Assembly (NCBI GenBank): GCA_047495785.1
Contig: JBLDXI010000028.1
Coordinates: 806,001-870,000 of the forward strand
DNA from: Lepidodermella squamata
Lineage: Eukaryota > Animalia > Gastrotricha
Direction: 5' to 3'
Length of the DNA stretch: 64,000 nucleotides
Translations under genes and position numbers: made by a program
Notes under the pieces: generated by a model
Database searches by the model: none
Told to the model about the DNA's origin: nothing
Seen by the model: the letters and a program-made list of their open reading frames with translations, nothing else
In this document: in pieces, positions 6,784-62,616 of the stretch
Position numbering within the stretch: position 1 is the first letter of the stretch
Layout of the letters: each line of letters begins with the position of its first letter

Positions 6784-7888
6784 CTCACACTTTCTATTTC
6801 AATTGGTACCTACATGATCAATACCATTCATTTCAAAACGCTAAAATGACGCAGAGATGGCCGAAGTATTTCCTTTAGGTTTTATCGAATTGGTGAATAA
6901 ACAAGTTTTCAGTGCAAATTTTTGGAATTTTTAGCCCAATTCTTTAAATTGCTAACAGGTGAAGCTGGGGTTCTATGACTTCGCTGATGAACCTAACAAC
7001 ATTTTTATGCGGTTATGATCGAACCCGGATCAATCAGTATCAAGTCGAAGATTAATCCCTCCAGATTCTTCACCTCAAAGGCTTCGTTTCTCAGGGTTGA
7101 AATCCATGCCGATGAAGCCGGAAATTTTCTACTTTCAACTCGAAATTATTTATGCTGCTTCAGCTAGAAAACTTGAGATGAGTCAAAGCGAGAAAAGACG
7201 AAAATTACGACAAAACCTATCGTTTATTACAACTGAAATTGCCTCGGCACTTGGCTGGCTGCGTTTCTTTTCCGCCCTTCAATTCGTCACAAATTTACAG
7301 CAACAGAGAAAACACATTCTTTTCAAAGAATAGTAATAATAATAAGAATGATATTGACGATATCATATATTTATAATATATAAGTAAGTATAATCAATCA
7401 ATAATTGTGGAATATATTGTTTTATCGCAATCGAACGGAAAGCAGGCGAAAAATTGTCGAGACAACAATTCCTTACGATTTTTTCGTCGTATCTTGGACA
7501 GACGCATTTTCATTCATTTTCATCTAAAATTTTGCAGCAAAGTGAAGAGAAAAACAGCTGGTTTTAGTATAGCAATTAATCGACTAATTTGTTTTTTTTA
7601 TACAAGAAAGAGAGCGAATTTTCACTGTGTTTTTTCATCATTCACCTGAATAGACAAGATACAAACATCAAAATTCACACTGGTTTTGCTTGAATTCAGA
7701 GATATAAAATTCGACAATATTTATTAGACATTTTTTTCACGCGAGAATAATTTACAGACAATTTCTCTCGTATGGTCCGCGGCGGTTGAATTCTTCTCTC
7801 ATGCGAACCAGATTGTTCAATTTTTCCAACGTGATAGCTGTAAAAAAATCGGCTGTTGTTAATTTTTCCCAAGCTACGTTTCTAAGAC

Positions 7889-9752
7889 CTAATGCGCAGC
7901 ACCGTCCGACGGCTGGCCGCCCGCCTGGTGGTGGCTGGCGAGCAGGCGTTCGACGGCCGCGTTCACGTCGCCGAAGGTGGCCGTCAACGCGCGCAGATTC
8001 GCCTCGCGGTTCGGGAATCCCATCGATTCGAGCTGTTCGAGTTGCGACGAGTAGCGCTGCTCCAGATTCGCCTGGTTTTGACCACCTTGTTGTTGAGCAG
8101 TCGACAGCTGAAAATCATAAATGAAATTGATAAAATCAATATTAAATTTAATGAAATTTTGAAATTAAAAAAAAATATCATAGTCGATCAAATTGAAAAA
8201 TAAGGCTAAAAACCCGGAATGCAGCATTCCAAAATATTTACCGTTGAAAATAGACCCATCATCATTTGCGTCAACGGATCGTTCGGACCGCCCTGACCCG
8301 GGGTTCCAGTAGCGGTTCCGGTAGCAGGACTTTGCGGCTGGGTCGACCCAGCCTCACCGCCAGCAGTTGTCGCCGGCAGACCGCCGAAATTCGGAATACC
8401 CCCAGTCAAACCGGCAGTTTCCATGGACGACCAAAACTCAGGCACCTCCTGCTGCAGCGTCCTAATCGCCTCCTGCATCTGCAACATGGCCTGCATAGCC
8501 CTCGGATTGGCCATCAGACGCTGCATAGCCGGGCTGGTGAGTTGCGAGGTCAAGGTCGAGTGATTTTGCCGGATAAAGTTCTGCAATTCAGGCGATTGAC
8601 GCACCATGGGGTTCGACATCAAAATGTTGCGAGACATCTCCGGATTCTGCGACATCATGTGAAACATCGCCTGCATATACGGCGCAGACATCATGTTCTG
8701 CATCAGTTGCGGGTTCACCGAAATTTGCTGCATCAGCGATTGAAGGCCCTGCCCGCCGAATAGGTTGAAATTCGACCCGGGTTGACCTGCCGCCGCTGGT
8801 TGCTGCGTCGAAGTGTTTTGCCCACCCTGAGGCGCCCATGGATTCGGCAACGGGTCACGAACTTCCTGCCCCCGTTGTCCCTCTGACGAGTCATTCTCAC
8901 CCCGAGCCGCACCCTGGTTAGCTAGAGCTGCGAAAGGATTCGGCGCAATACTTTCCTGGGTCGCGTTCAACATCGGCTCTTGAACGTCCCGGTACAATCT
9001 TTGAAGCGCGCTGAAACCACCAGGTAGCGATTCAATATTACTCAGCGCTCGGTCGTGATTTCTCAGCAGTTCTTGGAATGCAGCCGGGTTTCGGGCCAAC
9101 TCCATGGTTTGCCGCATGACGTCCGGGTTATTCAAAATGTGCGATAATTCCGGGTTTCGCTGCATCAACTCTTGAATCTGTGGGTTTTGCAACATAAATT
9201 GCTGCATAATTTCCGGATTTCCCATCAAATTTTGCACGAAAGGATTGTCCATGACCTGACGCAGCATTTCTGGATTGTTCATGATTTCTCGTTGCATATT
9301 TTGCTGCATTTCCATGAAGTTTTGAGATCCCATTCCCATGTTACCCAGACCCTGAAGTCCGCCAAACGAGCCGAGGCCAAAGGGTTGGGCTGAAGCAGGA
9401 GGTCGTTCTTGAGCAGGCCGGGTAGACGAGGCCGCCCGAGCTGTATCTTGTTCAACGCTTCGATTCGCTTGTTTGATAACGAGATGAACTGAGAAGCCGT
9501 CTTTAATACCCTGGCTTTCGAGAGTATCCTCATCTTTCAGAATTTTACCAGCGAAGATAAGACAGATCTGCTCGACGGGAGTATCGTTAAATTCTTTGCT
9601 GACTTTATCGCGAAGCTGAAATTATCAAGAAATAAATTAACCACATTTTCTTTCATATGAAAACGTACCTCTTTCACCGTTCCGCCAGCGCGGATTTTCA
9701 CATCTTTCTTTTCTTTGGGAGTTTTAATTAAAACAGTGATTTCACCAGACAT
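7889..9752 (-). CDS. UBQLN: Ubiquilin (UBL - STI1 repeats - UBA), ~558 aa
   Basis: Exons 9752-9669, 9615-8242 and 8107-7889, all phase 0. UBL: IKTPKEK...[14 protein letters not shown]...[15 protein letters not shown]1: [53 protein letters not shown]: [35 protein letters not shown]. Confidence 0.96.
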
Positions 9753-12700
9753 TTTTGAAAATATTCCTAACGAAAAAAACGTTACACTCTAGACGCAAGT
9801 CATAATGTATCTGATATCCGATGGTAACCAAAAGTTGACTTAGACGAAATAGAAGCTGCCATAAAATATAGTATATAGTAATCCGCGCTTTCTAACCGAA
9901 GGCGTAATGCAAATTCAACCGGAAAAGATACCCAAGGGAAAAGGGTTCCAATATTAGGGAAGCACAGCCACTTCTTGCTAGATCAAAGTTCGGAGAAAAG
10001 TGTTTTATTCAATTGAATCCCCTCAATTCAATTCTATTGATTAAATACAGAATGCAGACTACACGGGTCTCAAAACCAGCAACCAGCAAATAGGGATTTC
10101 TGGAAAATTCTAGAAAATACCTGTTAATTGAGACGCATAAAAAATAAAAACTTGTCACAAGTCACAAGTAACAGAATATAACAGAAAGCCTACGTCAATG
10201 AATCAGGATTTAGAGTGGGAAAGAAAAGATAGCCGACAGCGAAAAGCATAGTACGGCCAGATTGAAAGATTGCGACTTGTGACACGTCATACGTCAGGGA
10301 ATTCCAAGCCAAACAACTTATTTCCAACTAACATTTTCCGCACAAAAACTACATCTCTCAATCCGATAAAATTTGAATAATTCAATTCATTTCGATGGAC
10401 ATTAACTCGAAATTTTGTTAACACTAATAATAATGACTTTTTATTAAAAATCGAATGCCGCAGAAAAAAATTGGCAAAATAATTTATTGTTCATGCATAG
10501 AGGGTAAGAAGGTTTTTGAGTACACAAACAGCGGCATTTTTAGTTAGTTGTTTCCGATGGGCTTCCAAAATTCCAAAAATCGTACGTCCATCGTCCATCA
10601 ACCTTCAACCTCTGCGGTGAGCGGTGATTGATGATTGATGACTGGTCCCCCGTCTCCTGAGATTAGTCAAGTGCATCGAATGAATGATTTTCTAGGCTGA
10701 ACGACTGTCTCCCGCAGTTAATGAGTAAAATGGGGTGTTTTCAGCAGCAATCCAAGTACTTATTTATAGGATATCATTGAAATTATTGTTAGCATCCATG
10801 CTAGCGGGTGCGATGCCATGTATTTTGGCTCACTGAGAAATATGAGATTGGAAAGTAACGCATAATTTGTAGTAACTTTAAATACAATCAGAAAATTGCA
10901 TCTGGGTCAATTCCTCTATTTCTTTTATTTATTGCTTTATCAAGAAACAAGAAATTTCCTGAAGTGTAGAAAGCAAGATATTTATCCAGAAGGCGACTCT
11001 CGATTCCAGATTCCAGGATATATACTGAATTTGAAAACGAGGGGTGTCGATTTGTTAATCAAATCTTGGTAGAAATAACACACACAAGTTCAGTTTTTGG
11101 TCGAATCAAGGCGTGTTTTGGGGCGTTTAAATGAACTTCTGTGCGATTTTTATTACCTGGCATGCCAGTACTAGCTAATGCCTTCGTAACTCATGAGCAA
11201 TCTAAATCGGCTCGATGTTATTTATTGATAAATGAGATAGACCCGAGGCTCACTGCTCAGCACGAAAAGTCGTTCTCGGCATTTCTCTCATGCGCAAGAC
11301 GCAAGGGTTTTATGCCTTGGCGCGTTTTTCTGGCAAATGGAGTGGTTGGCTCATCAAAACAAGATTTCTGTAATGCTTTTCTATTGCTAATAAATTTTCT
11401 CGCTCCTTAATTTCTTTCAGGCGTCAATTGTTCAAATTCTTAGTGGGGACCAATTAGACTAAGCTGTAAGCCAGTGATTGATGAACGCGTGATTTTCAAA
11501 CAGTTCCGATCAAAAATGAAATGATTTTTCTTAGCCTCGCAAACTTGAGACCAAACCATTGTTACCTTTCTAATGTTGTTATAATCACACCCAGAACTTA
11601 TAGTTTTAGGAAATACTTAACATATTTTGTTAATTTCCGTCATAGTCTTCCGCAGAGCATTGGAAATATTTCAACTGAAAGAGCATCCTTCCTAGCCGTC
11701 ATTACATTTGCTCACCGTAATGTCAGTTAATCAGAAATCACCAAAATCACTCTCTGTATTTTAACCCATAGCGACGTAGGTCACCCTCCATCCGTTTTTG
11801 AATTCATGGTTCCAATGGAAATTACGAAATATACTCTATTTAATGTGAAATCGTCGCTGTTTCAATGTCAACAGTTATCAACATCTGCGGGTTCGCACGC
11901 TCAGAGTAATTGCCTTATCATTTCTGCCCATTTAGCTGTATTGTGTATGCTTGAGTAGACAATCCTTTTATTACACCTTCGCAACGTTAGAATAATTTAT
12001 TTCTGCGCACATGAGCAATGCGATCTTTATTTCAGCAGTGGAATGAATCTCGGAGCGAGAAATATAAACAGCAGTATTTTTCTAACAAATTTGCGCACAA
12101 TCCGCTCAATTTTCCGTTTTATTGTGCTATTGATTTTTAGCCATGTGCCGAGACTTGGCCTCTGCGCACACACAGGCGCACACTAATAATCGCAATGCGT
12201 ATGTGACACATTGAAAGTATTTTTTTCCGTCTCACAATGGCCACATTTAGCTATCGCCTGGTATACATTACTTCTTGTATATGAATATTAGGAGCACTTC
12301 GATATTGATGAATTAGACAGAAAAAAGCTGCTCGTAGTTATTTGCAGCGCGTGTGTTGACTTCCCGTTAGCGGCGACTAGAAACGATCGACTTTATTTCA
12401 GAAAACAGAGTAGCGCGCGATGTAAGCTGGCGTTGTCGGCTGCTCTAAATACTAAGTTTGTTTATTTAGCTTTTTACGGTGTCATATTTCTCACGTCATA
12501 AAACAAATTTACGAGTCATTAATGCTTACACATTACCCGGCAAAAAATTTAGCTGGTTAATTTTTTCTACATAGCCATAAATTAATCCGACTTAAATTCT
12601 TGTCATTTCTGCACTGCTTTTCACGTGCGATCATTTTAACTTGAGTGAAGCTTGAATATGTTTATTGCATTAAAGAATTAGAATGGATTTGCTGGCTCTA

Positions 12701-13537
12701 ATCCTGGCTCTTGAAACGTTGAAAAGGTCAAGTACTATTCATTCATAATTTATTTTGCTAGAAATTTATTATTCGATTTGATTTTCTTCCCGTCGGAATT
12801 ATATATTTTAGGACAATCTTGTTGATGACGCTCTTCTTTTCGAATAAGGTCACAACAAATCAACTATAGATGAACCTGTTATAAGCATTTTGATCTCGAT
12901 TTTTCGGACAAGAACGATAATGAAAAGTCTTAATAGGGAACTCGGGAATTGAAAAAATAAGATTGATCCTTGCAAAATTGCAAGTAGCTCATTTTTGCAG
13001 AATTTTTCTTAGCGAAACCATATTTCATAACTCGGGACCAAACTGAAAATGGCCTGTATTCGAAAATTCTTTCCCAAAAATTGAAGATTGCGATAATTTG
13101 ACCAGGACGAGCATTCAAAGTGATGACTATGAATAACTCACGCAGAATTTCAACGTGGTAATTTTAAGGCGTAATTTATTTAAATTGCATGTAAATTCGA
13201 TAATTATTGTCTTAAAATGGTCTTAAAAGTTACTTACGATTTCGAGCTGATTTTGAGCTCATGAAATGTTAGAATTTGGTAACGCTGCGAGAAAAATTGG
13301 TCCGAGTTTTCAGAAAAATCCAACTATTTTAGATTATTATGTTTGATTTTCACCAATAATTGGAAAATTTATTTAATCTTTAATCTGCTTTAATCTTGGA
13401 TTCTGGCGAATTCTCTTAGATTAGAAGTTTCTAACCCTAGCACGTGATATTTTTCAAAAACTGTTTATTCTTTCATTTTATAGTTATTTATTTCTGTATT
13501 TACCTGACTCAAATTTCGGCGAATTTCGCGCAACTAA

Positions 13538-46499: not shown

Positions 46500-49325
46500 T
46501 CAATCGACTAATCTGGCGAGTTTGTAAGGCAAAAGTGGGTGCAAATTGCGGAAAAATCGTCGCATTTCATCGAGGATAAGTCGATTCGAGCATCTAATGC
46601 TGACGTACATGACATGTTCAGCAACATAGTCGTCGATAGCCGAAACCAACGCCTGTAAATAAAATGAAGACACTCATTTAACAATTCAATTTTCAGCTTC
46701 AATTTTGATAGACACTTGAATTTTTAAACTATAAATTAATTGTTAGTCGTTTTTTTCCGAAAAATCCTTGTTCAACTGTGTTTCAAAGCTGTGAATTTCT
46801 TTAAATTTTTTTTTCATTTTTTACCTTCACTTTTTGTAGGTCGAGTGTGAATTCTAAACAGCAAATCTCAATCCGTAAAATTCGACCAAATCCACGAAGG
46901 CAGAAGGCCAAATGCCGCAAAACGACATCGTATCCGGCAAAATCGTCCGGAATCCATTCATCACTGTTCTCTATGCACGGAAATCTAGACATTTCAGAGC
47001 GACTACCGAAAGTCACGTTCAAAATTGGCAGCACTCGAATTTTCGGGCAGATCACTCGCAATCGACGCGGGTAAATGCCAGCGACAAATTTAAGCAGCGT
47101 GAAGCCATTCGAGCCCTCTCGAATTCGCAGTTCTTCAATGTTCGGAATTGTAACCAGAATTTCTGCAAACTCGTGCTCATCTAACGAGTGCCGGTGAACG
47201 TTCAAGTCGAGCTTTTTCAAGCTATGGCTAGATCTTGCCAGCATTTCTCGCATTTCGGCGTGATAGCCTCTACATCCAATGCTCGGCCTGAGGGTTAGTT
47301 CCTCCAAATTACTTGGTATTGATTTGAAAAATTGACATAGATCGTCAACAGAATCAGTTGTTCCCATGTCAAAATTTCGAAGATACAAATTTCGAATGTT
47401 CTCGAACGCCGCCAAGCAGCTGGCAAAGCTGGCCAGATTAAAATCACAACCTGAGAAAAAACAAGAAAAAAAACAAAAAATTATTATTTGCCTTAAATTG
47501 CATGGAAAAAATTAAAAGATCAATGGTTCTTTATTCCTTAATTTTCGATTTTTTTCAGCAGGTGAGACTCGACTTTTCAGACAACTTTCCATGCCAAATG
47601 AGATTTCATTTTTCGCAAAATTGGGCCCTTGATTTTATATTTACGATCTTCGAAAAATCAAAATCAAACTTAAATCAAAGAGCGCACGCAGGTTACAATT
47701 TTTTGAATGCACTTAAATCCTGAAAGAAAACGCTTTACATTTTTCGAGCGAGAACCCGCCTATATTCATTCGATTCGAAATTGGATGAATTTTATTTTGA
47801 TAAAAAAAACCGCCGGGAAATTCGAAAGTTGGCCTTTGTAAATTGCCGCGCGCGGTACTTCAAATGCAACCTGTAACTTGTGCGCGCGCAATTTTGCAAG
47901 CGGCGGACCAATCATGGTGGTCCTGAAAATGTGCAGGTTTACTTACCAACCAACTCGAGCGTTTCGAGATAAGGCTGATAATTCGACAGAACTTTCAACT
48001 CTTGCAACGAATAGCAATCACTCGAGAACGTCGTCAGAATCCCCGGCGTTAGTTCGGCCAGCATATTCAATCTCGCGCGCTCGATAGCGGCTTCCTTGCT
48101 GACGGAAGGCATCCAGCGGAATCGCAAGTGCCTGACGACATCGAAACATCGGCGCAATACGAAGCCGAATAGTTCGGGTGTCATTCGGGTAGCAACGGGC
48201 GAAAAATCAACGACTTGCCAGAATATTTTCAGCTTGAATAGATCGCGCAGTTCGCGACATGTACCCGATAAGGCCACAATTTCCTGTAAGTATCAGACCA
48301 ACATTTATCGATAGGGCCTCGAAAAATAATTCAAAAAATCCTGAAAAATCGATTTTTGAAGTGGAATGAAAAAATAAAACAAGCTTGAAAAAATTTGAAA
48401 AAAATAATCGAATTATTTTACATTAAATTTTGCAAAATTCGGATCTTAACTTTTCGCAGCCTTGAATTTTTCTTTTATCAAAACTTAAAAAAATTGAAAA
48501 ATTTTAGTTCAATAGAATGAAAGGTTCTCACAAACCGGGAGTTTCAGATAGGAGCCAAGTTGGAACGAGAAATCAAGAGGTAGCCTAGGAAGACAACTAA
48601 TCACTGGGCAGTAATCAACTTCTTGCTTCATCAAAGCGCAATATTCGAATCGATAATGAGGAATTGGGACAAAGAAAGAAGCCCAGCTTGATTCAACGGT
48701 GAAATACAGGCAATCGATGCCGAGTTTGAGGTTCACGCTATGTTGAGTGGAATCAACATTTACTGGCAGATCCAGGTGCCAAGATGGGTTCCAGCCGAGG
48801 CCGTGATGGCAACCGACAACGATTCGGGTCAACTTGAAATCGAAATTAAGGTTGCTGACGACCTCAATTTGCGCAATTCGAATTATGTTGTCCAGCTGAA
48901 AAAATTGACGTGTTTTTACATTCAGTCCCAACATTTTCTAATACTCAATTTCTATTATTTGACTAAATCCACGTCTTCTTCTTGAATGATTAAACATGAA
49001 GCTTTCTTACTCTTAAAATGTCCCAAAAATGAAAAATCAGCGTCAAACCACGAACCTGAACGAGACAAAAGCCTTTGGCCACAGGTGATTTCTCGAAAAT
49101 TCGATCAATCGAGTTAGTACACTTTCGAATCGGTTTAGCGACATCGCTCCTACCCGGTGGGCTCGCAACGCTTGACCGCTTGAAATCATCGCTGATTTCG
49201 CAAATGATTGAAACGCTAACCGAGCCGCAGTTATTGTTGACACGGTCACTGGCTGATATTGATATCTGCGGGTCTTCGCGAGCTAAGCTCGGCTCTATTT
49301 TCAGCGCCAATTTACAAAAATTCAT
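46500..49325 (-). CDS. F-box/LRR protein A (~581 aa) with a ~200-aa N-terminal domain
   Basis: Exons 49325-49056, 48895-48536, 48283-47947, 47450-46825 and 46652-46500 are phase-consistent. F-box LPRLPLDFSFQLGSYLKLP|EIVALSGTCRELRDL....FWQVVDF, followed by LRR-like units (LETLEL, IRNLYL, LEELTL, LKKLDL, IEELRI). Confidence 0.75.
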
Positions 49326-49597
49326 TGATCATAGAACAGCCCGAAAATTGGTCGATGCATCAAGCCGAAATGGCTGATCATTTTATTAGAGTGACCTGAA
49401 TCATGAAAAATGTAATAAAATTTTGGTTGCGTGACCTTGCAGCTGCGCACATCTAGGTCATCCGCAACTAAATTAATAGCCGATCAGCCGCTCTGCAATA
49501 ACCTGCCACATAAAACCAATGGCGAGCAACAATAAAATGTAAAACGCAAAAAAATCTTTAAACATAACTTTAATGAATTCGAAAACTAATTATTTCT

Positions 49598-50027
49598 TTA
49601 TGCAACAAGAATAATTTGATTGAATAATGTTAGTAGCGATAAAATAGTCAGTGCCACCAGGCTATACATTGCTGAGGACGGAGATGAGTTGCATGCGTCA
49701 GTCATGCAGCAGTATGGCTGCACAGATGTGCCACCTATCATCACCGAATTCGGGCATCCCTTGGCGCAAGTCCGAAACGCAAACGTTCCATATTGGCTGC
49801 AACGAAAAAATCGCAAAAATTGGATCAAATAATATGAAACATAACATTATAACGTACTCCTCGATTGTTTCACCAGCCACCTGGGCTCCGATACAGAAAG
49901 TTTCCGTGGTCTTGCAAGAAACAACCTCGCCTCTGGACTGGCACAGATTGCAGTAGAGACATTTTAGCCCAGAAGCTGATTCAGCCAGCAAGACCACCAA
50001 AAAAAGGAACAGCGAAAAAAATTCCAT
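49598..50027 (-). CDS. Ly6/uPAR three-finger protein, likely GPI-anchored (~122 aa)
   Basis: Exons 50027-49858 and 49796-49598 (61-nt intron, phase 2). Signal peptide, GLKCLYC start, 10 Cys, terminal CCMTDACN motif, then a Ser-rich spacer and hydrophobic tail. Confidence 0.9.
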
Positions 50028-50424
50028 AACTAGTATTTTTGTATTATAAAGCCAATGATGGATGTACGCCCATGGCCGTAACCCATGACAGTCTGATGAT
50101 ACGTACATCTCTTGATGCGCAAACCATTCATACGGCAATAAATTGCAGCCCTATTATGTCCTATGGCAAATACTCTTAAAACCTGCCACGTGCCGTAATA
50201 GTTTGGAAGCATGGCATAGGTAAGCAAATAAGTTGTAAACGGCTTTATATTGACGGAGCAGTGAAACACTACCTCGCATTAATCCCGGATAATTAAACTC
50301 CAAGTTGTAAATTGATCGCAGCATTTTTGGCAATTTTTCACATCGCTAATTTATTCAGTTTCAAATTAAATATAACTTCATTGTTAATTTTTCCTTCCTC
50401 ATCATCTGACCAAGCCAAAACAGT

Positions 50425-52641
50425 TCAGCGGCGTTCGTAGTGGAACCTGACAGGCAGCTCACGGTACCGGGATGCAACCTTGCGCAGTTTGTGGCGGGGG
50501 TTTTCTAAAATTTGATCCCCACGAATGCACAAATCGGCCAAATAAGATGCCGCATGACGGTCAAGTGCGCCAATCAGAGACTGGAAAAATTGAAAAATTC
50601 AGCAAAAACATAAAAATAGTTTTTTCAAATTATCAATTTTTATACCGTTCTATTTTAATTCATATCAAAATTAAAAATTCATACTAAAAATTGCATTTGA
50701 AATATTTTGAAATTTTTTATTAACTTGGAGAAAATGAGAAATTACCTCTATTGGTTGCCAATTTTCCAGTTCCATATCGCAACGAATTTCGAAGCGCAAA
50801 ACTCGCCCGAAACCTTTCATGCAGCCGGCAAATTCCTTGACCATGTCATCGTAATCTATGTCGCCCAGGTCATCTTCCTCGTCCAGATCATCATCGCCGT
50901 CTTCCTCAGTCCATTCCGCAACCAGGAGCGGGAAAACTCGCAAATTCGGGCATAAATCACGCAATTTATCCGGGTAAATCGCCTCGAAAAAATTGCGAAA
51001 TTTAACGCCGGGGTAGAAAAACCCGCGGATATTCAGCTCTTCTAAACAAGGTAGAGTTCTCAGAATGTCTCCGAGGAATTCGTGGTCGAACAGTGATGAT
51101 TCACCCAACCCAGACCACGGCATTTCAATATCGCCCAGTTTCAACATTTTCAAGCTTTTCCCTGATTTTCGTAGTAAATCCATTAAAATCGGACGATACA
51201 ACGCAGGATCGTCACACTCATCGACTGAAGGCGTTAACGTGAAAGATTCAAGCGCTGGTAGGGCCTTGAAAAACTGGCTAATACCATCCAAATCTTCGGC
51301 GGCCATCATAAGGAATGAAATTTCGATCAAATGAACGTGGCGAAGTTTTGTTAAAGCAGTTAAGAATTTGCAATCGTCGCCTGAAATTCGATTCCTTCTG
51401 CAATTCAGCTCAAGAGTCGTCAGATTTTGCTGAGTTTCGCCTAGGATTTGCAGCACATTTTCAGTTAGACAGTCGCTGCTGAATGTCTCCAGGTTTCCAG
51501 GCTTCAATTTCCTTAGAAAATTCGGGAAATCGACTTTGCTCGCTGCCATTGGAATCCAGCGGAATCGAAGGTGTTTCACGCTTGAGGAGCACCTTTCGAG
51601 TACGAAATCAATCAATTGCGGCGTCATTTTAGAGGCAACTGAGGTGAAATCAACTTTGATCCAAAGGGACGGATCTTTTAGGATTTTCCTAACTTCCGAA
51701 TTCGTTCCAGATAATGCGACCAGATCCTGCGAAATGGCGATAAATCGACAAAAGATGGAAATTTCGGGTAAAATAAATCATTATTGAATAGGCATCTTAA
51801 AATTCAATTCCAGCTAGCTTCGGAAGTGACAAAAGTTTGTAAAAAAAAATAAAAAAAAATAAATATCAAATTTGATGTAGGAATTCGAAAATTTGGATTT
51901 AATAATAATATTGGAAAAAAGAGAAAAAAAGAAATCTTTTACCGATAAGTCCAAGTATTGAGCGATATCCAACCAAGATTTGGCATCCAGCTTCGGCATT
52001 TTATCAGAATCGGGAAATTTTGATTTTCCAGTATCAATAAGAGGCGGTAACCGGAAAAATCCTCTCGCAAACTGTGGATCTCGATCAACAACGTAAAACG
52101 AAGATTTGTAAGATTCGAAGGTGAATCGAAGCACATTGATTGGCGGTGTTTTACCAGCTGGAATGGCGAAACTTTGCAGTTTTTCGCCTATTCTAGGAAT
52201 GTCCCGGTGCCATTTCGGCGTCCAACAGGAATCGTTGTAGTCGCCACCCGCGATTGAGACGAGTGTACAGCCATTTTTCAGATCATTCAACACATCGATT
52301 CGATAAATTTCGATCGATTTCTGAATCTATAATCAGCACAATTCAAAAAAAATTAAATCGAAATGTTGAATTTTTTAATAATATATAAGAAAATTTTACT
52401 TAACCGTTAGCTGTCCGAAGCCTCTTGCGACGTGGGTGCCATTGTTGAAAATTAGGTCAACCGTGAAATGCAAGTCTTTGTTGAGTTTGCCAACAAAATG
52501 AGCCGCTTCATCGCGACCTTCCCGATTTTTCACCGGTTTGCAGTAGATGGTAGCGAGGACCGATCCGCAATCGACGAATTCCTTGCTGTCGCCGATAAAT
52601 CCGGACGGCTTTACAGTAAACAACAACTTCGTTAATTCCAT
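50425..52641 (-). CDS. F-box/LRR protein B (~583 aa), tandem paralog of A
   Basis: Exons 52641-52405, 52320-51943, 51726-50746 and 50580-50425, all phase 0. F-box MPKLDAKSWLDIAQYLDLS|DLVALSGTNSEVRKIL....LWIKVDF. Shares MTP.L..FVL.RC...V.HLRFRW.P with A, plus LRRs. Confidence 0.78.
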
Positions 52642-53341
52642 CTAAATTGCATGAATTTAGACTTGAAATAGAATGGTACCTATTAGCCTGCTGGGGCGTT
52701 GTAATACACTCATATAAGTCATGTTGTTTTGCACCGCTTATATTTGAGACAAAGGTTATTATAGTACTATCGATTAAAGAAATAAATGATATAATAGCAA
52801 ATAGCAGTGCTAATACCTCATTACCCAACCAATTTGCTTATCGATCATTCATAAACATGTGCGTAAAAAAATGAGAAAAAATTATAACTGAAACCCAAAA
52901 CATTTCTCGACTCGTGCGCGCACGTGATTTTTTTCAAACGAAGCATCCTAATCCAATCGTTTTCAAATTCAATTAATTTCATAATACGCTAAAATGCTTT
53001 TTGAATTTGGGTAACATATACGCCCAAACTGTTAAAGAAGCAAGACTAATACTAATAGCTAGAGAATGATTGAGAATGATCAAAGTGATCGATAGGAGGT
53101 TCGATATTCTGATAAGAGAAAGTAAAACAAAGGATACTCGGGACTGTGAGTGAAAATTCTGAGGATGAGAAGCTGATGTTGCGCCCAAAAACGCGTACAA
53201 ATTTCTCTGGCCACTAGCCACATATGACTCATCGCGCGCGATTCAAAACCCGTAAAACCTCGAAGCTTTTCCAGCAGTTTCCGGCGGCGAAAGCGTCAAA
53301 TTGAAGGCAATCTCTTGCATTTTAATTCATAACGATTACGT

Positions 53342-54195: not shown

Positions 54196-57100
54196 ATGGA
54201 GCTTCGAATATTGCTTTTTGCAGGTTTGTTAACCGAAGGAAATGATGAAGAGAATGTTCATTTTTCTGATGATTTCAGCCTTAATTAGGGCGGCAAATGG
54301 CCAAGGCTCGGTTTACACAATGTGTTCACACACGGCGGTTAACGCTTTTACTGACATGTGGGGTTACATTCAAAGCGATGGCTACAGCGGGGCTTACGGA
54401 GTAAGCCGGGGCTGTACGTTCACAATCAATGTTCGCAACCCAGGCTACGAGTACATATCACTGGCAGTTGCTGACTGGGTCCACGACGGATCCACAGGGG
54501 ATCGTATGCAGATTTGGGCCAACTCGGGTAACGGCTTTTACTGGGTAAGTTATCTCCTTCAACATTCGAGGATGAATCATTTCAAATCCCACAGCAAAAC
54601 GATGTTTACATGCATACAGGCAGCACCTGGTTGACAACATACCGAGCTGTTGGCCACCTCAGGATTCAATGGAACTCTGACAGTAGCCGACCCCTTGGCA
54701 ATGCTTGCCGGTGGCGTTTGTACTGGACCTGGCAGAAGGCTGTTTTCGGCTGCGAACTCAGCCCTCAGCCATACATATTCCCGAATACAACTCGTAGTGG
54801 CATCATCAAATCGCCGTTTTTCCCCGATCTCTACCCACCAAGCGCTACCTGCATCACCTACATCGACGTTGATCCTCTGACAGATTCCGTTGAATTCTTC
54901 CCGACTTTGTTCGACCTGAACAGCGGCGATAACGTCAAGTTCTTCGTCGGCGATTTGCAGTATGACAATTGGATCCTATACAACTCATATACTTCACTTC
55001 CAAGCCCATTTCGCATTTACGGATCCGATGTTAAGGTCATTTTCAGTTCGAACAGCTTTGCTGCTAGTTGGGGCTATCAATTTTACTGGCGAGTTATATC
55101 TAAGGAACGCTATTCGTTTGCGAGACTGGATTCGCTTGTCGCTCTCTGGCCTTTTACCATGTACCATCGGGATGTTGATATCGTGAGCAATTGCCGAGCC
55201 AATGCTTATCCAGCTGTTGGGACTATCAGTCCGGTAGATGGTCCTTCTGGTAGATTCGGCTCGGCGCTGTATTTCCAATCGGCCTATCTCGCCATGACAT
55301 CCCCGACCTGTCAGGCTTCGACAAATTTTCCAGCTAGCTTCACCATATCTTTGTATGCACAATCCTCGATGCAAACGGCATTGATCGATTGGATAGCGGC
55401 AGCTCCTTGGGGACAGCAATTTTGGTTCTACCCCGCCGGAACTGTCCATTTCAACAATGGCTTCCTTGACACGATGACAGTAAACAGCCAATCCCCGTCG
55501 AATAGTAAATTTCAGTTTGTAACCGCAACTTTTGAGCAGCAAACCAATACATCTGGTCTTTACTTCGACGCCGTAAAAAAATCCACGAAGTCTGGGGTGA
55601 AAACTTCTGGTTCAAAAACTGGACAAGGTGTTTACATCGGTTACCGTGATAGCTCTCTTACTTTAGGCGGCGTTCCAACCATTTCTAGACTATCTTGCCT
55701 GACCATGTACAACGCAACTTTGAGCGCTGGGGAAATCGCTCAAGTACGCATTGCATGCGAGCGCTTACATTCACAGTACGAAATCTATCCAGCCAGTAGC
55801 CTGGTTGCATGGTTTCCGATGGACGGCTATGCATCAAACGGCCGCCTGGAGGATACCAGCGGCAACGCAAGACACGGCACAGTCCAGTCAACAGCCGATA
55901 TCACTCTAACTTCAGGTCCTAGTGGAGCGGCCAACACCGCGCTGAGCTTCAATGGGGCCACAAACGCCTGGATCAACTTCCAGGGTTACGATCTCAGATT
56001 CATGAAGTCGTTTACTGTAGCGTATTACGTAAAATCAAGTACGGCGTCTATTATGCCGTTGATGGAGTTCTACGATAATAACCTTGGCCGAGGGTTGATC
56101 ACATACCGATGGGATTCTTCAAGCTGTTTCCATGTCAATGGTTACGGAACGTACTACAGCGATTTCATGATGACAACTTGTGGCCACTCCTACACTTCAT
56201 GGATGCATGTAGCGTTCACATACGACTTCACCACGGGAATACTGACAACTTACAAGAATGGAGTATCAATCAATAGCATAGGCTATGGTCTTCGCTACAT
56301 TGGAGCGACTGCAAATGGTTTTGTTATTGGGCGGGAGATCGGAAACACCCTCAGATTTGTCGGCCAAATGTCATGTGCAGCAATCTACTCCTCAGCACTG
56401 ACTCCCTTTCAATTGACACAGGTCATGACGGCGTGTACATCCGGAGAGCGCAAACCACCCCGATTCCTCGAACTGCTCGGCTTTTGGCCTCTTACCTACC
56501 TGACAGGAACTCGTGACATAGGTCCTAACGGTTTTCATGGGGTTGCAAAATCAGCAAACGTCACACTGTCTCCAGGGCCTTTCGATGTTCCCGCAACAGC
56601 CTACACTATTGGCGCCGATGCTTCGAGTTACATCAATTTTCCAGGGGTGAATTTGAACCTGCAGTGGAGGAGCTGGACTATCTCTTGCTACGTGAAAACG
56701 CTGAATGCAAACGGCGGCCCTCTCTTTGAGTACCTGTTAGGGTCGAATGTGCCTGGTTCTAGTTACGGCATGAATTGGTGGCTATACAGTACAACAATGC
56801 GATTCGACTTTCAAGCAACCGCGCCAACGGTTTCAGGCTTCAGAGCGGGGACCTGGCAGTTTATTAGTGCGATGTATGATTCACCGACAAGTCAAGTTTC
56901 ACTGTGGATCAATGGGGCAAGAATCAGCGCCTGGACGGCTAATCCAGCCGCAAAGTCTGACTACGGGTTCAATTTAGGAATGCGTCAGTTTGACCAGTCA
57001 TTTTTGAATGCTCAAGTCTTTTGCTTGAGCATCTATCATGTCGCCCTTAAATATGACGAAGTTGGTCGAGTTATGTCGATGTGCCAATCCTTCGCAGCCG

Positions 57101-60100
57101 ATAGCCTACTGCAGAATGAGACCCTTCGAACGCCGGAGGTCAATTGCAATTTCGACGTTGATTTTTGCGGGTGGACTCAGGATACAAACGACGATGCAAA
57201 CTGGATTTTAGGCCATGATGCAACTCCAACTGGCGCACAGGGAATTTTCTCAACTGGACCTCGTTTCGGAATTTCGTCAAGTCGAGCTGACGGTAAAATT
57301 TATTGAGATTATTATTCCAAGTCTCATTAACTGATTTACAGCTCTTGACCAATACGCGTTAATGAGTGCTGTTGATGCAGGGGTACTGGCAGGTAACGTT
57401 GCCAGGATTATCTCACCCATGATTCCAGCTGGCTGGCGATGCGTTGAGTTTTGGTATTATATGTCCGGAACTACTGTTGTTTCTCTCAAGGTCAGCCTTG
57501 TTGCTGCAAGTCAATCATTTTGGACTCGGACCGGATCGCAACTCAAGCAGTGGAACTTCGCAACGAAATCAGTCTACTTCGCTACCCCTGATCAGATTGT
57601 TTTCGAGGCAGCGAGAGGTTCCAACATATTTTCTGATATTGCGATCGACAACGTCCGAGTGACTGAAGGCAGATGTATCGCCGCAAGTAATGTTTAAAAA
57701 ATGACTATTAGCATTGAATGTATGGTATTATCCGGATTGTATCGTAAAATATGCCTTCTTAATGGCCGAATTATAAACTCATAAAACCTTCTTCCAAGCA
57801 GGGATTTTTTGATATTTTCTAAACAGGCAGGGATTTTTTGATATTTTTATATCAAAAAATGCCCGCTTGTCCAGAAAATATCACCAAAAACCCCACTTGT
57901 CAAACACACAAGAGAAACCCAAAAAAGTTCAAGCAACACTCCAAAACTATTTTATTAAGAATCACGAAAAATGTGGCATAATTTTGGGAGAATTGGGAGA
58001 ATGCACACGCACAGGTATCGAATCGGGCAGCATTCACCCCAATCGAACAGCACTTGGCTACGAGCTCGGGAAAATCGGGCAGAACTCGTCCAGGAATTGG
58101 AGAAATTTGGGCAGAATTCGTCCAGAAATTGGCGAAATTTGGGCAGAATTCGTCCAGCATGTCGCGGAAATCAAGAAACAATCGGCCAGCATTCCGTGAA
58201 ATCCGCGAGAGCTCGGGCAGCATAGGATTCCAGAAATCGCAACACGGCATCGCTTGTGACAGTGGAAGAAAGCTAGAAGATACAGCGAATCGAGCGAAGT
58301 AGACGAATTCGAGCAAGTCTTGTTGGGCGTTTGCTGAAACCTTGACAAATTGCGGCTATTCGTTCAAGATTTCGTCGATATAGAAGCAGCTCTGCAAACC
58401 GAGTTGCCGAAGGCGCCGTGAAAGTCGCATTGATAGCCATCCGAAGCCAATCGAACAGAACCACCTTGGTGCGAGAGCCCGATTGCAAGATTTAGCACCA
58501 GCAATTTGTTTGGCGTGCCAGAAATGCGGAAAATTCGATGTGAAAAACGAACCAAAAACTCGCAAAATGAAGAATGCGAGAAAAAAATGAGCAAGAAACA
58601 AATTTCACGATTTTTTTAAGTTAGATCTTTTAATTTCAAATCAAATCAATAGAAATTCTGCGAGAGTGTACCATACAATACTAGTAACCCTGAAAATTTT
58701 ACGATTCGACCCGGATAACACACATATACGGAAGCCAATCAGGTTATATGGGTTTAAAATCGCCTTCAGGCTGATATTTCGTCCTTCGGCTGCGCCTCAG
58801 GCCGAAATATAAGCCTTCAGGCGATTATAAACCCATATACCCTTCTTGTCTTCCGTATATTATATAACATTTTTAACAGGTCCATGCCCTCCTGATTGGA
58901 TCGATTTCGGGCAAAAATGCTACTTTCCGTTTTTAAACATGAATTTTGCGTTGAGTGACTCAGCTGTGTTTTGTGTCACACGACAGCGAGCTAGGATTGC
59001 TAGACCGGAGACGCAATCTGAATTCGACTTTCTCAAGAACCTTATCGGCAGCAATACCATTGTTTTGGATGGTAACTTGGTATCTGGGGTCTGGAGAGAC
59101 AGCGATCAATATTCTATTCCATTCTTGCGTAAGCCTTTCTACTTCTTGATCTTCTTCATTTTGATCTTCTTTATTGCTTCTTAAGCATGGGCAAGTTCTC
59201 AGCCAGGTGCTGGAACCGTCCTGGGAATGACAAGCAGTGGCTTTGTCACCCTGTCCGGTGGTACCGCTCCTAGTCTATGCGAATTGGACAAGCTGGCTGC
59301 ACAGCATGTAACATTCAACTGCTCGTTCGATAACAAGCACTTATGCGGTTGGTATAATTGGAACGCTGACTCCACCGTTCCGAGCACCGGGGAAAGTATG
59401 GATTTAGACACCTGGAGTGGTATTAGTGGCCCTTGGCAGACTTACGACAATGCCAATGGCCCTGAATGGGATTGGAACCAAGGAGGTTGAATATGTCATG
59501 ATATTTGTAAATGATTCTATCATTTATGTTCGCATAGCAACTCGCGGTTTTTATCTGATGACGGCTGATATGCAAATTCCGACATGCAGCGGTAGTCCGT
59601 ACACTGATTTGCAATCTCCTTATGTTAAAGGTGGTAACCCAAAGTGCTTACGATTTCGAACCTACCAGTCTGCTATTTTCAACTCGATCGAAGTTCAAGT
59701 CGGCTGGCTCAGTTCAAGTGGTAGCCTGACGGTTCAGCCGACTTACGTAAACTCCATTCAGAGCAGCGACAGAATCTGGCGTACGTGGCAGGTTGAGGTG
59801 TTCCAATCCTTGTACTTCCGCTTCATCATCCGCATATGGAAAACCTGTACATCAAATGGCTTCGCAAATCAGGCAATTGATGACATCATGCTCTTCAACA
59901 GCACATGCTCGATCCCTCTGTTCATGGGCACAGGGGGTCCAACGACCAACAGCCAACGACCTGGCTACACAAGCTGGTCGGATGCTGTCGATTCCATCAA
60001 TGATGCCAACTTTGCTAGTTGCGATACTTCGAATCCTTGGCGAGCCCAGGGCTGGCAGGTTGATGGAACTTGGACCTGTCCGGCTTGGAATCTACCAACC

Positions 60101-62616
60101 GGCTATCGCCTAAACGGCCCGCAGTCAGATTACACGGGAGAAAACAGGTACCTGAGCGCCACCAATTCTTACGGCCTTCCGTTGGCAGGGCAGAGTCGTC
60201 TATCAGGACCAGCCGTTCCTGCAGGGCTAAAATGTTTCATATTTCATTACTTCCAGTACGGCTACGACATCGGAGAATTCCGAGTGACGGATCAAAATGA
60301 GCGGTATCTATTCGCTTTGCAACGCGGCCAATACCCTGCTTGGCGCGAGCATAGAATCTTATTCAATAGTGTCTACCCGAGTCGGTTGAACTTCACCACG
60401 ACAGCTGGTCAAAATGATACTGATACTCATTTGATGTACTGGGGTGGTATTCAACTAGACGATTTCTACGTGCGAAACGGGAGTGATCTATGCCTTGGTT
60501 TCATGGATTGCAGTTTCGACGATAGTTCGTACCTATCAGACTGTGGTTGGCAGCAAAATGATACGGATGATGGTGACTGGGTCAGGTATTCTGGGGAGAC
60601 ACCAGCCAGGAACGCAATTACAGGTCCGAATGCTGATCAGAATACCGGTAAGGGTCACTACCTGTATTTCGAAGCAACTGGAATGAAGCCAACTGCTAAA
60701 GCTCGCATTCACATGCCCCCTATGTCGGCAGGGAACCACTGTCTAACATTTTTCTACCATATGTTTGGCGAAGACATCGGATCTTTACGAGTGTTTTACG
60801 TTCCACAAAACATCTCGACCTCCTACAACGGAACTTTCCCAACTTACAACGAAGTGGAGGTTTGGAGGAAGGACGGTCGACAGGTGAATTCCTGGCTGCG
60901 GGCTATGGTTCCCCTTCAGCTGAATTACCCGCAAATCATGACTTTTGAAGCGTTGCGTGGTAATGGAGATCGAGGTGATATTGCCATTGACGACGTGACA
61001 GTTCTTCGAGGCAACTGCCCTCAAGATCGGTCTTTCGTTTGTAGCTTTGAGCGCGGCGATCTCTGCGCATGGTCCAACGACCCTGGTTCAGCTCGACGTT
61101 TTGAAGTTCGTCGCGGTAAGACTCCTGGATCGCCGATATCTGGACCTGAAGGTGACAACACCGGTGAATACGCCGGGGGCTACTACGCCTACGCACCTGG
61201 AAATGGAGGCCCAGCTGGTGCATTCGCTCGATTGATAAGCCCGTCGATCAGAGGTCCTGGGACTGTCTGCTTGCAAGCATATTACAATCTTCGCGGTCGT
61301 TCAACTGGGACTCTGACGATTTCAAGAAATTCCGAGGCGGTTTACAGACTTCGCGGGGGAACGACTGGCTATGAATGGCGGCGGATCTCTGTAACGATCG
61401 GCACGAATAGCCTGGCGTCTTTCAACATCCAAATTACTTATACCGCATCGTCAGGCTATGCCGATCTGGGTCTGGATGATATCGTAATTTCGGATGGTCC
61501 TTGCCAGAATAATGCAGGAGACACTGAAGGGTTGATGATGCAATCATTTTCGAACACCCGAGCGGGCTTTGCTCTATCCCAACACACAATTCTTAACCAA
61601 ACAGCTGATTCTCTTGTAGCTTGCTCTCGCCAATGCGTCGCTACATCAGGCTGTCAATCATTGAATTATGACTCCGCTAGCAAAGTCTGCCAACTCAACG
61701 ACGATATTGCCGAGGATGATCCGATGAACTTCAATTCGACAAGCTCGACAACAACTCATGCTTGGATTGTCAGCTCGTTCACCCAGCTGGAATCAGTATA
61801 ACTTGTTCCTCATAAATATACCTATTTTTTATTCATTAATTTTCACAGCACTTGAAAAACTTGTGCACCTTGGATTCTGTGACTTGCACTTTGACATCGA
61901 GCTGCAGCTTAATGCCTCATACTGATATGCTCGTCTGTAATTGCGTTGAGCCTAATGAAAGCTGCTACATGCCGCAAGACTGCTCAAAGCTGTACGCCAA
62001 TGGTTACAAATCAAACGGAACGTATTTGATCCAGCCAACGACAAATTCACGACCAGTAATGGTTGCATGTGAAATGGATACTATCAGCAACAAAGGTTGG
62101 ACTGTTTTTGCTAAGCGATACTCTGGAGTTTTAAGATTCCATAACCGGTTACTCTCTGAGTATCAAAACTTCTTTGGCTCGCCCAGTCATGAATACTGGA
62201 TCGGCCTTGATACGATGGTTGCTTTGACAAATCAATTCAACTACACCTACGCCTTTGACGGGGGAATTTTTAGTTCATCTTTGCCATCGATTGTTGGCAA
62301 CACAAACCAGAGATTGGTCATATCTCCAGCAAGCAGTAACTATCGCATTGTCCTATCCCAAGTTGGCACGATGACAACGACAATGTTTAATCAACCATTC
62401 CAAGCCAGGGATTCGGGCGATTCGCCCTGCTTAGCCGCGTTCGCTTTTGCAGGTTGGTGGTACGGAGCTTCGCCAAATTGTGTCGACGGCATCTTGACAG
62501 CCCCTTATCGACCCGGAGAGGCACTTTCTACCGCAAAACTTGGCATGTACGCCAATGATTTCAATGGCACTGTCGTTGGCTTGTCATCTATGAAGTGGCG
62601 CGTTACCCAAATATGA
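54196..62616 (+). CDS. Giant secreted mosaic protein (~2303 aa): SP-CUB-CUB-LamG/ConA-like x3-MAM-C-type lectin-MAM x4-PAN-EGF-like-fibrinogen C-terminal
   Basis: Exons 54196-54223, 54279-54544, 54595-57292, 57342-57686, 58880-59128, 59186-59485, 59538-61795 and 61849-62616 are phase-consistent (6912 nt). CUB: SGIIKSPFFPDLYP..ATC. LamG: LVAWFPMDG...W.HVAFTYD. MAM: CNFDVDFCGWTQ..DD..W, CLTFFYHMFG..IGSL, GDIAIDDV. CTL: CPPDWIDFGQKCY. PAN: CSRQC....GCQSLNYD....CQL. FReD: PQDCS..Y..G..SNGTY.I.P...GWTVF.KR..G...EYWIGLD...GWWY. No TM segment. Confidence 0.85.
58077..58158 (+). repeat. 32-bp tandem repeat (about 2.5 copies) within an intronic repeat element
   Basis: Unit GGGCAGAATTCGTCCAGAAATTGGCGAAATTT starts at 58077, 58109 and 58141. 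Confidence 0.75.
58742..58841. repeat. ~100-bp imperfect palindrome near an exon acceptor
   Basis: GGTTATATGGGTTTAAAATCGCCT..AGGCT.ATATTTCG.CCT ... AGGCCGAAATATAAGCCT..AGGCGATTATAAACCCATATACC. Confidence 0.7.

Follow-up and report, generated by a model that had tools for sequence, protein, structure and literature searches.

A gene at positions 54196–62616, on the plus strand of a 64,000-nt stretch of the genome of the gastrotrich Lepidodermella squamata (assembly GCA_047495785.1, contig JBLDXI010000028.1, positions 806,001 to 870,000; hereafter the window), encodes a predicted secreted protein built of 14 extracellular modules. After a signal peptide, these modules are, in order, two CUB domains, three Laminin_G_3 (LamG) domains, a MAM domain, a compact C-type-lectin-like domain (CTLD), four more MAM domains, a PAN domain, an EGF-like module, and a fibrinogen-related domain (FReD). 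We hold with high confidence that the locus is one real, intact gene with this architecture. An earlier note, made from the letters of the window alone, had described a single secreted protein of about 2300 residues with some 14 modules in this order and no transmembrane segment, and the module scans and hydropathy analysis have borne this description out. The overall explanation that we favour, with a confidence of about one half, is that this is an intact gene of an old family whose product would serve as a multivalent adhesion or matrix scaffold.

The eight exons (Table 1) are joined in frame across seven introns, all seven of which have GT..AG borders, as read from the open reading frames (ORFs) and the raw sequence. 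The coding parts sum to 6912 nt, corresponding to 2303 amino acids and a TGA stop, and the phases agree at all junctions, so the eight-exon in-frame model proposed earlier stands. The introns measure 55, 50, 49, 1193, 57, 52, and 53 nt in order, six of them falling within 49–57 nt. The mini-exon 1 and its donor (CAG followed by GTTTGTTA) are also found in the closest paralog, L013, where other starts are impossible. This conservation is telling because the synonymous sites between the two copies are saturated. In two environmental homologs, L019 and L022, the signal peptide is likewise split by a phase-1 intron. A main start at the ATG at 54242, with the preceding “ttgctttttgcag” acting as a spliced-leader acceptor, was considered and rejected, given the mini-exon and donor kept in L013 and the phase-1 split in L019 and L022. 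Since the paralogs L014–L016 have a contiguous signal peptide, a start at this ATG may still be used as an alternative; it would give a different, contiguous signal peptide and leave an identical mature protein.

The single-gene model could be doubted at the fourth intron, and the earlier note had itself singled out the junction 57686 to 58880, along with 61795 to 61849. At over 20 times the length of any other intron, this gap would suit two adjacent genes misjoined across 1.2 kb, with CUB-LamG-MAM upstream and CTLD-MAM-PAN-FReD downstream. However, the gap is filled by a dispersed repeat of ~1.06 kb that has dozens of matches on many contigs (at least 111 pieces, mostly at 71–95% identity), and the length of the intron is attributed to the insertion of this repeat. 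Its ends are near-palindromic (67-nt arms at 58724–58860 and 40-nt arms at 57805–57888) and 24-nt direct repeats flank it; from these features it resembles a non-autonomous transposable element. The reading phase carries across the junction, and the downstream half lacks both a start codon and a signal peptide of its own. In the five intact paralogs that were fetched (L013–L017), all exons are collinear within ~7.3 kb and the MAM1-to-CTLD junction is ~60 nt; the stops within the paralog matches sit in paralog-specific short introns and none lies in coding sequence. In L022, the end of MAM1 and the CTLD share one ORF, with no intron between them. Because of the short paralog junctions, the repeat in the gap, and the uninterrupted ORF of L022, two misjoined genes are very unlikely, and the single-gene claim of the earlier note is upheld.

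The locus could also be a silent or decaying copy whose ORFs are open by chance. It is the lone copy on its contig, it carries a repeat inserted in an intron, and no transcript-derived protein is on record for it. Against decay, the open frame extends over 6.9 kb, all splice sites are intact, and the proportion of nonsynonymous differences (pN) from the closest paralog is far below that of synonymous differences (pS) in every module. A decaying copy is therefore considered highly improbable. Over the 2291 codons aligned with the closest paralog, pN is 0.154 and pS is 0.770 (saturated); since in most modules pS has reached or passed saturation, the ratio of nonsynonymous to synonymous rates per module was obtained as a bound alone. 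The saturated pS together with the low pN indicates, at the level of codon comparison, that the copies of the family are old and under purifying selection. Best kept are a 47-codon piece from the C-terminal part of CUB1 (96% identity) and, among the full modules, MAM3 and MAM4 (86–87%), while the first and second LamG domains (LamG-a, 57%; LamG-b, 64%) and the N-terminal half of the CTLD (66%) have diverged most.

The paralogs were found by searching three of the exons against the L. squamata genome (121.2 Mb, 151 contigs). At least nine loci of the family were located there, including five in tandem on contig C32 (about 4,207,300–4,248,100) and three on contig C7, and homologs lie on two environmental contigs; the gene is not a one-off. 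The intron positions vary within the family. Most paralogs have an intron before PAN (near 61649) that the studied copy does not have, and several copies carry extra short introns inside LamG, MAM, or CTLD. One C7 paralog has its exons 1–6 (C7:3005680-3008443) ~16 kb upstream of its MAM-PAN-FReD exons (3024673-3027798), an arrangement that may reflect a large insertion, a pair of partial copies, or an assembly error. On contig C120, two inverted copies (7708-9681 on the minus strand and 11053-13026 on the plus strand) score identically to the C32:4234299-4236272 paralog. The pair looks like a palindromic chimera or a haplotig of an assembly based on multiple displacement amplification (MDA), not extra genes; the published Lepidodermella assembly was made from MDA-amplified DNA (PMC11660948).

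All searches and fold predictions were run exon by exon, and the modules split by introns (CTLD, CUB1, MAM1, and MAM2) were judged from their exon pieces. In the Pfam scans, CUB2 scores 25.2 bits against a gathering cut-off of 21.4 (CUB, PF00431), and CUB1, whose domain is split by an intron, gives a weak 13.5 bits. The three Laminin_G_3 domains (PF13385) score 30.3, 48.8, and 38.9 bits against a cut-off of 27.6. An AlphaFold model of CUB2 and the first LamG domain, of moderate quality (mean predicted local distance difference test score (pLDDT) of 64), matches the CUB-PTX part of Gpr126, neuropilin (a2), the CUB domains of C1r/C1s, pentraxins, and the lectin domain of trans-sialidase in a fold search. 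Elsewhere in the genome, contig C10 (about 0.97–1.51 Mb) holds a cluster of more than 20 single Laminin_G_3-like ORFs of ~200–300 aa, which match the third LamG module at 26–35% identity.

Of the five MAM domains (PF00629), MAM1 lies across exons 3 and 4, MAM2 across exons 6 and 7, and MAM3–5 in exon 7. In exon 7 the MAM family is matched in four stretches with an E-value of 1.1e-70 and 237 bits, and exon 4 reaches 65 bits; the scores per segment range from 23.6 to 98.3 bits. Exon 6 alone has no Pfam match, and the start of exon 7 continues MAM2 at MAM profile positions 42–158. For the PAN_1 domain (PF00024) of exon 7, the score is 30.4 bits (cut-off 21.4, E 3.6e-7). Exon 8 opens with 42 residues that contain six cysteines, with a C-x-C formed by the fourth and fifth, and all six are invariant in eight homologs. 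The EGF-like module is tentatively assigned from this pattern, with no Pfam match to these residues and a moderately confident structure model there. The protein has 19 NxS/T sites, and no transmembrane segment was seen, since no 19-residue window exceeds a Kyte-Doolittle value of 1.6.

The lectin-like domain is split by an intron in every copy of the family. Membership in the CTLD fold was judged by the CPxxW...KCY start and the C1–C4 disulfide, and the profile of the first half agrees with it. This profile (82 residues; alignment A1 of eight homologs), in which C2, C13, and C31 are invariant, matches more than 170 solved CTLDs, the best being Clec2d11 (2.8e-9), followed by CD69, NKG2D, and LOX-1. 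By these matches, the domain resembles the Ca2+-independent domains of natural killer receptor type. Pfam gives only a weak UL45 match for exon 5. The features of a canonical Ca2+-dependent sugar-binding C-type lectin (EPN/QPD and WND motifs, long-loop region, C2–C3 disulfide) were not found in the second half, which has ~36 residues, one cysteine, and WASSQPG, and no WND. The earlier observation that the domain lacks the EPN/QPD and WND motifs is supported, and by its sequence the domain is a compact, non-canonical CTLD.

The FReD of exon 8 is well supported as a member of its family. The Fibrinogen_C profile (PF00147) matches with an E-value of 1.9e-19 (70.8 bits), and sequence matches in the PDB include MFAP4, angiopoietins, and ficolins (E down to 5e-19). 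The structure model (mean pLDDT 67.6) matches ANGPTL4, angiopoietin-2, and ficolins with a Foldseek probability of 1.00 and E-values down to 2e-11; the P subdomain is poorly modelled (pLDDT <50 at residues 185–241). The domain had been called shortened and divergent. It is in fact full length, aligning with ANGPTL2 over 10–213 of 227, and its divergence is real, the P subdomain being divergent and the Ca2+ loop deleted. The loop motif (DxDND) falls in a five-residue gap in the studied copy and in L013 and is missing in the other same-genome paralogs; L019 keeps DQDND at this position. Among the aligned homologs, the position after the second cysteine of the P subdomain is occupied by V, I, H, T, or S, and the histidine of the acetyl pocket is thus not conserved. 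Judged from this alignment, the FReD of the studied copy lacks the acetyl-group-binding features of the ficolin/FIBCD1 type, a DxDxD-type Ca2+ loop before the first P-subdomain cysteine and a histidine right after the second. Since the canonical Ca2+/sugar and acetyl-group sites are missing from the CTLD and the FReD, the ligands of these two domains are, as far as the motifs can tell, probably proteins or non-classical glycans. More than 100 separate FReD matches, distinct from the studied family, lie mostly on one other contig, C24 (about 1.85–4.63 Mb, e.g. 4.17–4.63 Mb).

Outside the genome, close relatives are few. A HMMER search of the 899-aa exon against 1.84 billion representative sequences gave five matches below 1e-30. 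The best matches of this exon are a MALRD-like protein of Saccoglossus (36% identity, MAM motifs), Lingula proteins with four LamG_3 domains with or without PAN, and proteins of Ptychodera and Branchiostoma. A 264-aa protein from ENA (44% identity) led to the metagenome contigs L019–L021. In a word search with the MAM-PAN exon, two true relatives were found, P0176 and P0177, which lie on the L019-type and L022 contigs; the next matches are MALRD1-like at no more than 30% identity. A word search with the last exon gave nothing at 1e-15. On L019 and L022, the modules run in the order LamG, MAM, CTLD, MAM repeats, PAN, and FReD, after which the next copy in the tandem begins with its signal peptide, two CUB domains, and LamG. 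Three unrooted single-exon trees place both environmental copies apart from all same-genome copies with 100% support. So far, the family has been seen in the L. squamata genome and on two environmental contigs alone. No annotated protein with the same architecture was found in the exhaustive HMMER search with the 899-aa exon or in the word searches with the MAM-PAN and last exons, which is consistent with the earlier remark that no described protein was recognised as carrying all of these modules in this order. A literature search for such a domain combination among adhesive proteins gave nothing relevant.

Several known proteins share parts of the architecture. The MALRD1-like proteins of invertebrates (Saccoglossus XP_077865040.1, Acanthaster, and sea urchins) are also long secreted chains with tandem MAM domains, and they are the best named matches for the MAM start of the 899-aa exon and for the four-MAM exon; one Lytechinus relative combines FA58C, five MAM, PAN, and SRCR. 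However, the likeness stays at or below ~36% identity and is confined to MAM motifs. These proteins carry LDLa and/or SRCR, which the mosaic protein does not have, and they lack its CUB-CUB-LamG_3 head with three LamG_3 domains, its CTLD, and its C-terminal EGF-FReD. The MALRD1 pattern of MAM alternating with LDLa was not found, as no exon matches Ldl_recept_a. The uncharacterised Lingula anatina proteins LOC106181945 and LOC106169280 (four Laminin_G_3 with or without PAN) are the best matches of the LamG region (28–29% identity, E 1e-41 to 1e-44) and share its tandem Laminin_G_3/pentraxin-like modules followed by PAN, but they are about half as long and have no CUB, MAM, CTLD, or FReD.

The neuropilins and the ectodomains of Gpr126/ADGRG6 place CUB beside lectin-fold or pentraxin-fold modules, and neuropilin also has MAM. 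These are, however, membrane receptors with FA58C or GAIN/seven-transmembrane parts, and they have neither FReD nor PAN and a much smaller number of modules; with no F5_F8_type_C match and no transmembrane segment, the mosaic protein does not have the neuropilin order CUB-CUB-FA58C-FA58C-MAM-transmembrane. Ficolins, snail FREPs, tenascins, angiopoietins, and MFAP4 likewise end a secreted multi-module chain with a FReD, but their N-termini are collagen, IgSF, EGF/FN3, or coiled coil, and the FReD of the mosaic protein differs from theirs in its deleted Ca2+ loop and unconserved acetyl-pocket histidine. Contactin-associated proteins and neurexin IV combine LamG, EGF, and a fibrinogen-like module in one extracellular chain; they are transmembrane proteins with a discoidin head and no MAM, CUB, CTLD, or PAN, and their order differs from that of the mosaic protein. 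Every part of the mosaic belongs to a known domain family. The earlier term “novel system” is therefore too strong: there is no new mechanism, and the novelty lies in a new arrangement of well-known extracellular domains.

For the function of the protein, we tentatively favour, at slightly less than even confidence, a multivalent extracellular adhesion or matrix scaffold. The product would be a glycosylated secreted scaffold placed in the apical matrix, the cuticle, the egg envelope, or an adhesive secretion. The well-conserved MAM modules would provide self-association and spacing, as MAM does in meprin and RPTPmu, and the more variable lectin-fold modules (LamG-a, LamG-b, and CTLD) would determine the binding target of each paralog. 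These roles are inferred by analogy with the established biology of MAM, CUB, and LamG. The scaffold is favoured because the architecture is fixed, the constraint is strong, the MAM core is conserved, and the canonical sugar and Ca2+ sites are lost. As judged from sequence divergence, copies this old and constrained are more in keeping with matrix or adhesion than with a recognition receptor that evolves fast.

Several points weigh against this choice. Recognition proteins of invertebrates, too, are marked by lectin-fold modules with a terminal FReD. A few sites may be diversifying even where whole domains are under purifying selection. The signal peptide and the lack of a transmembrane segment were called by simple hydropathy. 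No transcript-derived protein turned up when the 899-aa exon was searched exhaustively or when the last exon was used in a word search, which is not evidence of silence.

The most serious competing function is that of a soluble pattern-recognition protein or agglutinin, in which LamG, CTLD, PAN, and FReD would bind microbial surfaces for immunity or for the capture of bacterial prey, with the paralogs covering different targets. Four kinds of lectin-fold or recognition modules on one secreted chain would suit this role, as would several paralogs that diverge most in the lectin-fold modules, and the very large FReD repertoire of the genome makes FReD-based recognition plausible. On the other hand, the CTLD has no Ca2+/sugar motifs and the FReD has neither its Ca2+ loop nor the histidine after the second P-subdomain cysteine. 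With its few, ancient members under strong constraint and its invariant order of 14 modules, the family is unlike typical expanded recognition families, which are short and fast-evolving. We regard this role as possible but rather unlikely, below the adhesion or matrix scaffold.

A role in the egg envelope or gamete coat, in the manner of zonadhesin, which bears MAM, and of the CUB/PAN proteins of egg coats, ranks below both and is considered improbable. Known proteins of gamete adhesion and of egg coats do contain MAM, CUB, and PAN modules, and the mosaic is a large, secreted, predicted glycoprotein. However, the Pfam scans of the exons revealed no ZP, vWD, or mucin region, and strong purifying selection is unlike the rapid evolution typical of gamete-recognition proteins. 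A bolder version of the structural role makes the family a phylum-restricted invention and the main protein of the gastrotrich duo-gland adhesive, of the cuticular scales, or of the egg-shell matrix, in which a self-associating MAM backbone would be studded with non-canonical lectin-fold heads. This is unlikely in our estimation.

Table 1. Exons, introns 1 and 4, and selected domains of the mosaic gene, in window positions.
Feature	Positions	Strand	Content
Exon 1	54196–54223	+	ATG and nine signal-peptide codons; phase-1 end; donor CAG, then GTTTGTTA
Intron 1	54224–54278	+	55 nt; alternative in-frame ATG at 54242 inside
Exon 2	54279–54544	+	Remaining signal peptide (predicted cleavage after AANG), N-terminal half of CUB1; GTAAGT donor at 54545
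Exon 3	54595–57292	+	899 codons: C-terminal half of CUB1, CUB2, three Laminin_G_3, N-terminal part of MAM1
CUB2	about 54736–55104	+	Within exon 3
Three Laminin_G_3 / ConA-like domains	about 55105–57129	+	Within exon 3; Pfam
Exon 4	57342–57686	+	C-terminal two thirds of MAM1; MAM 8.3e-18, profile positions 45–157; phase-1 junction
Intron 4	57687–58879	+	1193 nt; enlarged by ~1.06 kb dispersed repeat (about 57760–58820)
Exon 5	58880–59128	+	First 82 residues of the C-type-lectin-like domain (N-terminal)
Exon 6	59186–59485	+	C-terminal part of the lectin-like domain (~36 aa, WASSQPG, one Cys), N-terminal part of MAM2
Exon 7	59538–61795	+	752 codons: remainder of MAM2, MAM3, MAM4, MAM5, PAN/Apple
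Exon 8	61849–62616	+	EGF-like six-Cys module (~42 aa), FReD (~213 aa), TGA at 62614–62616

Upstream of the mosaic gene, a run of ORFs on the minus strand of the window (46801–52828) carries sub-threshold hints of LRR and FN3-like (LIFR_D2) domains. These ORFs probably form an unrelated multi-exon gene, located between a cluster of G-protein-coupled receptor genes and the mosaic gene.

To our knowledge, gastrotrichs have almost no molecular biology. Fibrinogen, lectin, intron, and gene families are all terms that do not occur in the published genome paper on Lepidodermella (PMC11660948). Here, a mosaic of 14 standard modules has been kept unchanged through old duplications while single modules diverged. 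Should the family prove to be a phylum-restricted structural invention, it would be the first component of gastrotrich adhesion or cuticle to be known at the molecular level, and it would represent a type of temporary adhesive with no relation to those of flatworms and echinoderms. As a conserved, multi-copy, secreted family, it is a well-defined candidate for the extracellular adhesion, matrix, or recognition machinery of gastrotrichs, on which in situ and proteomic studies could focus.

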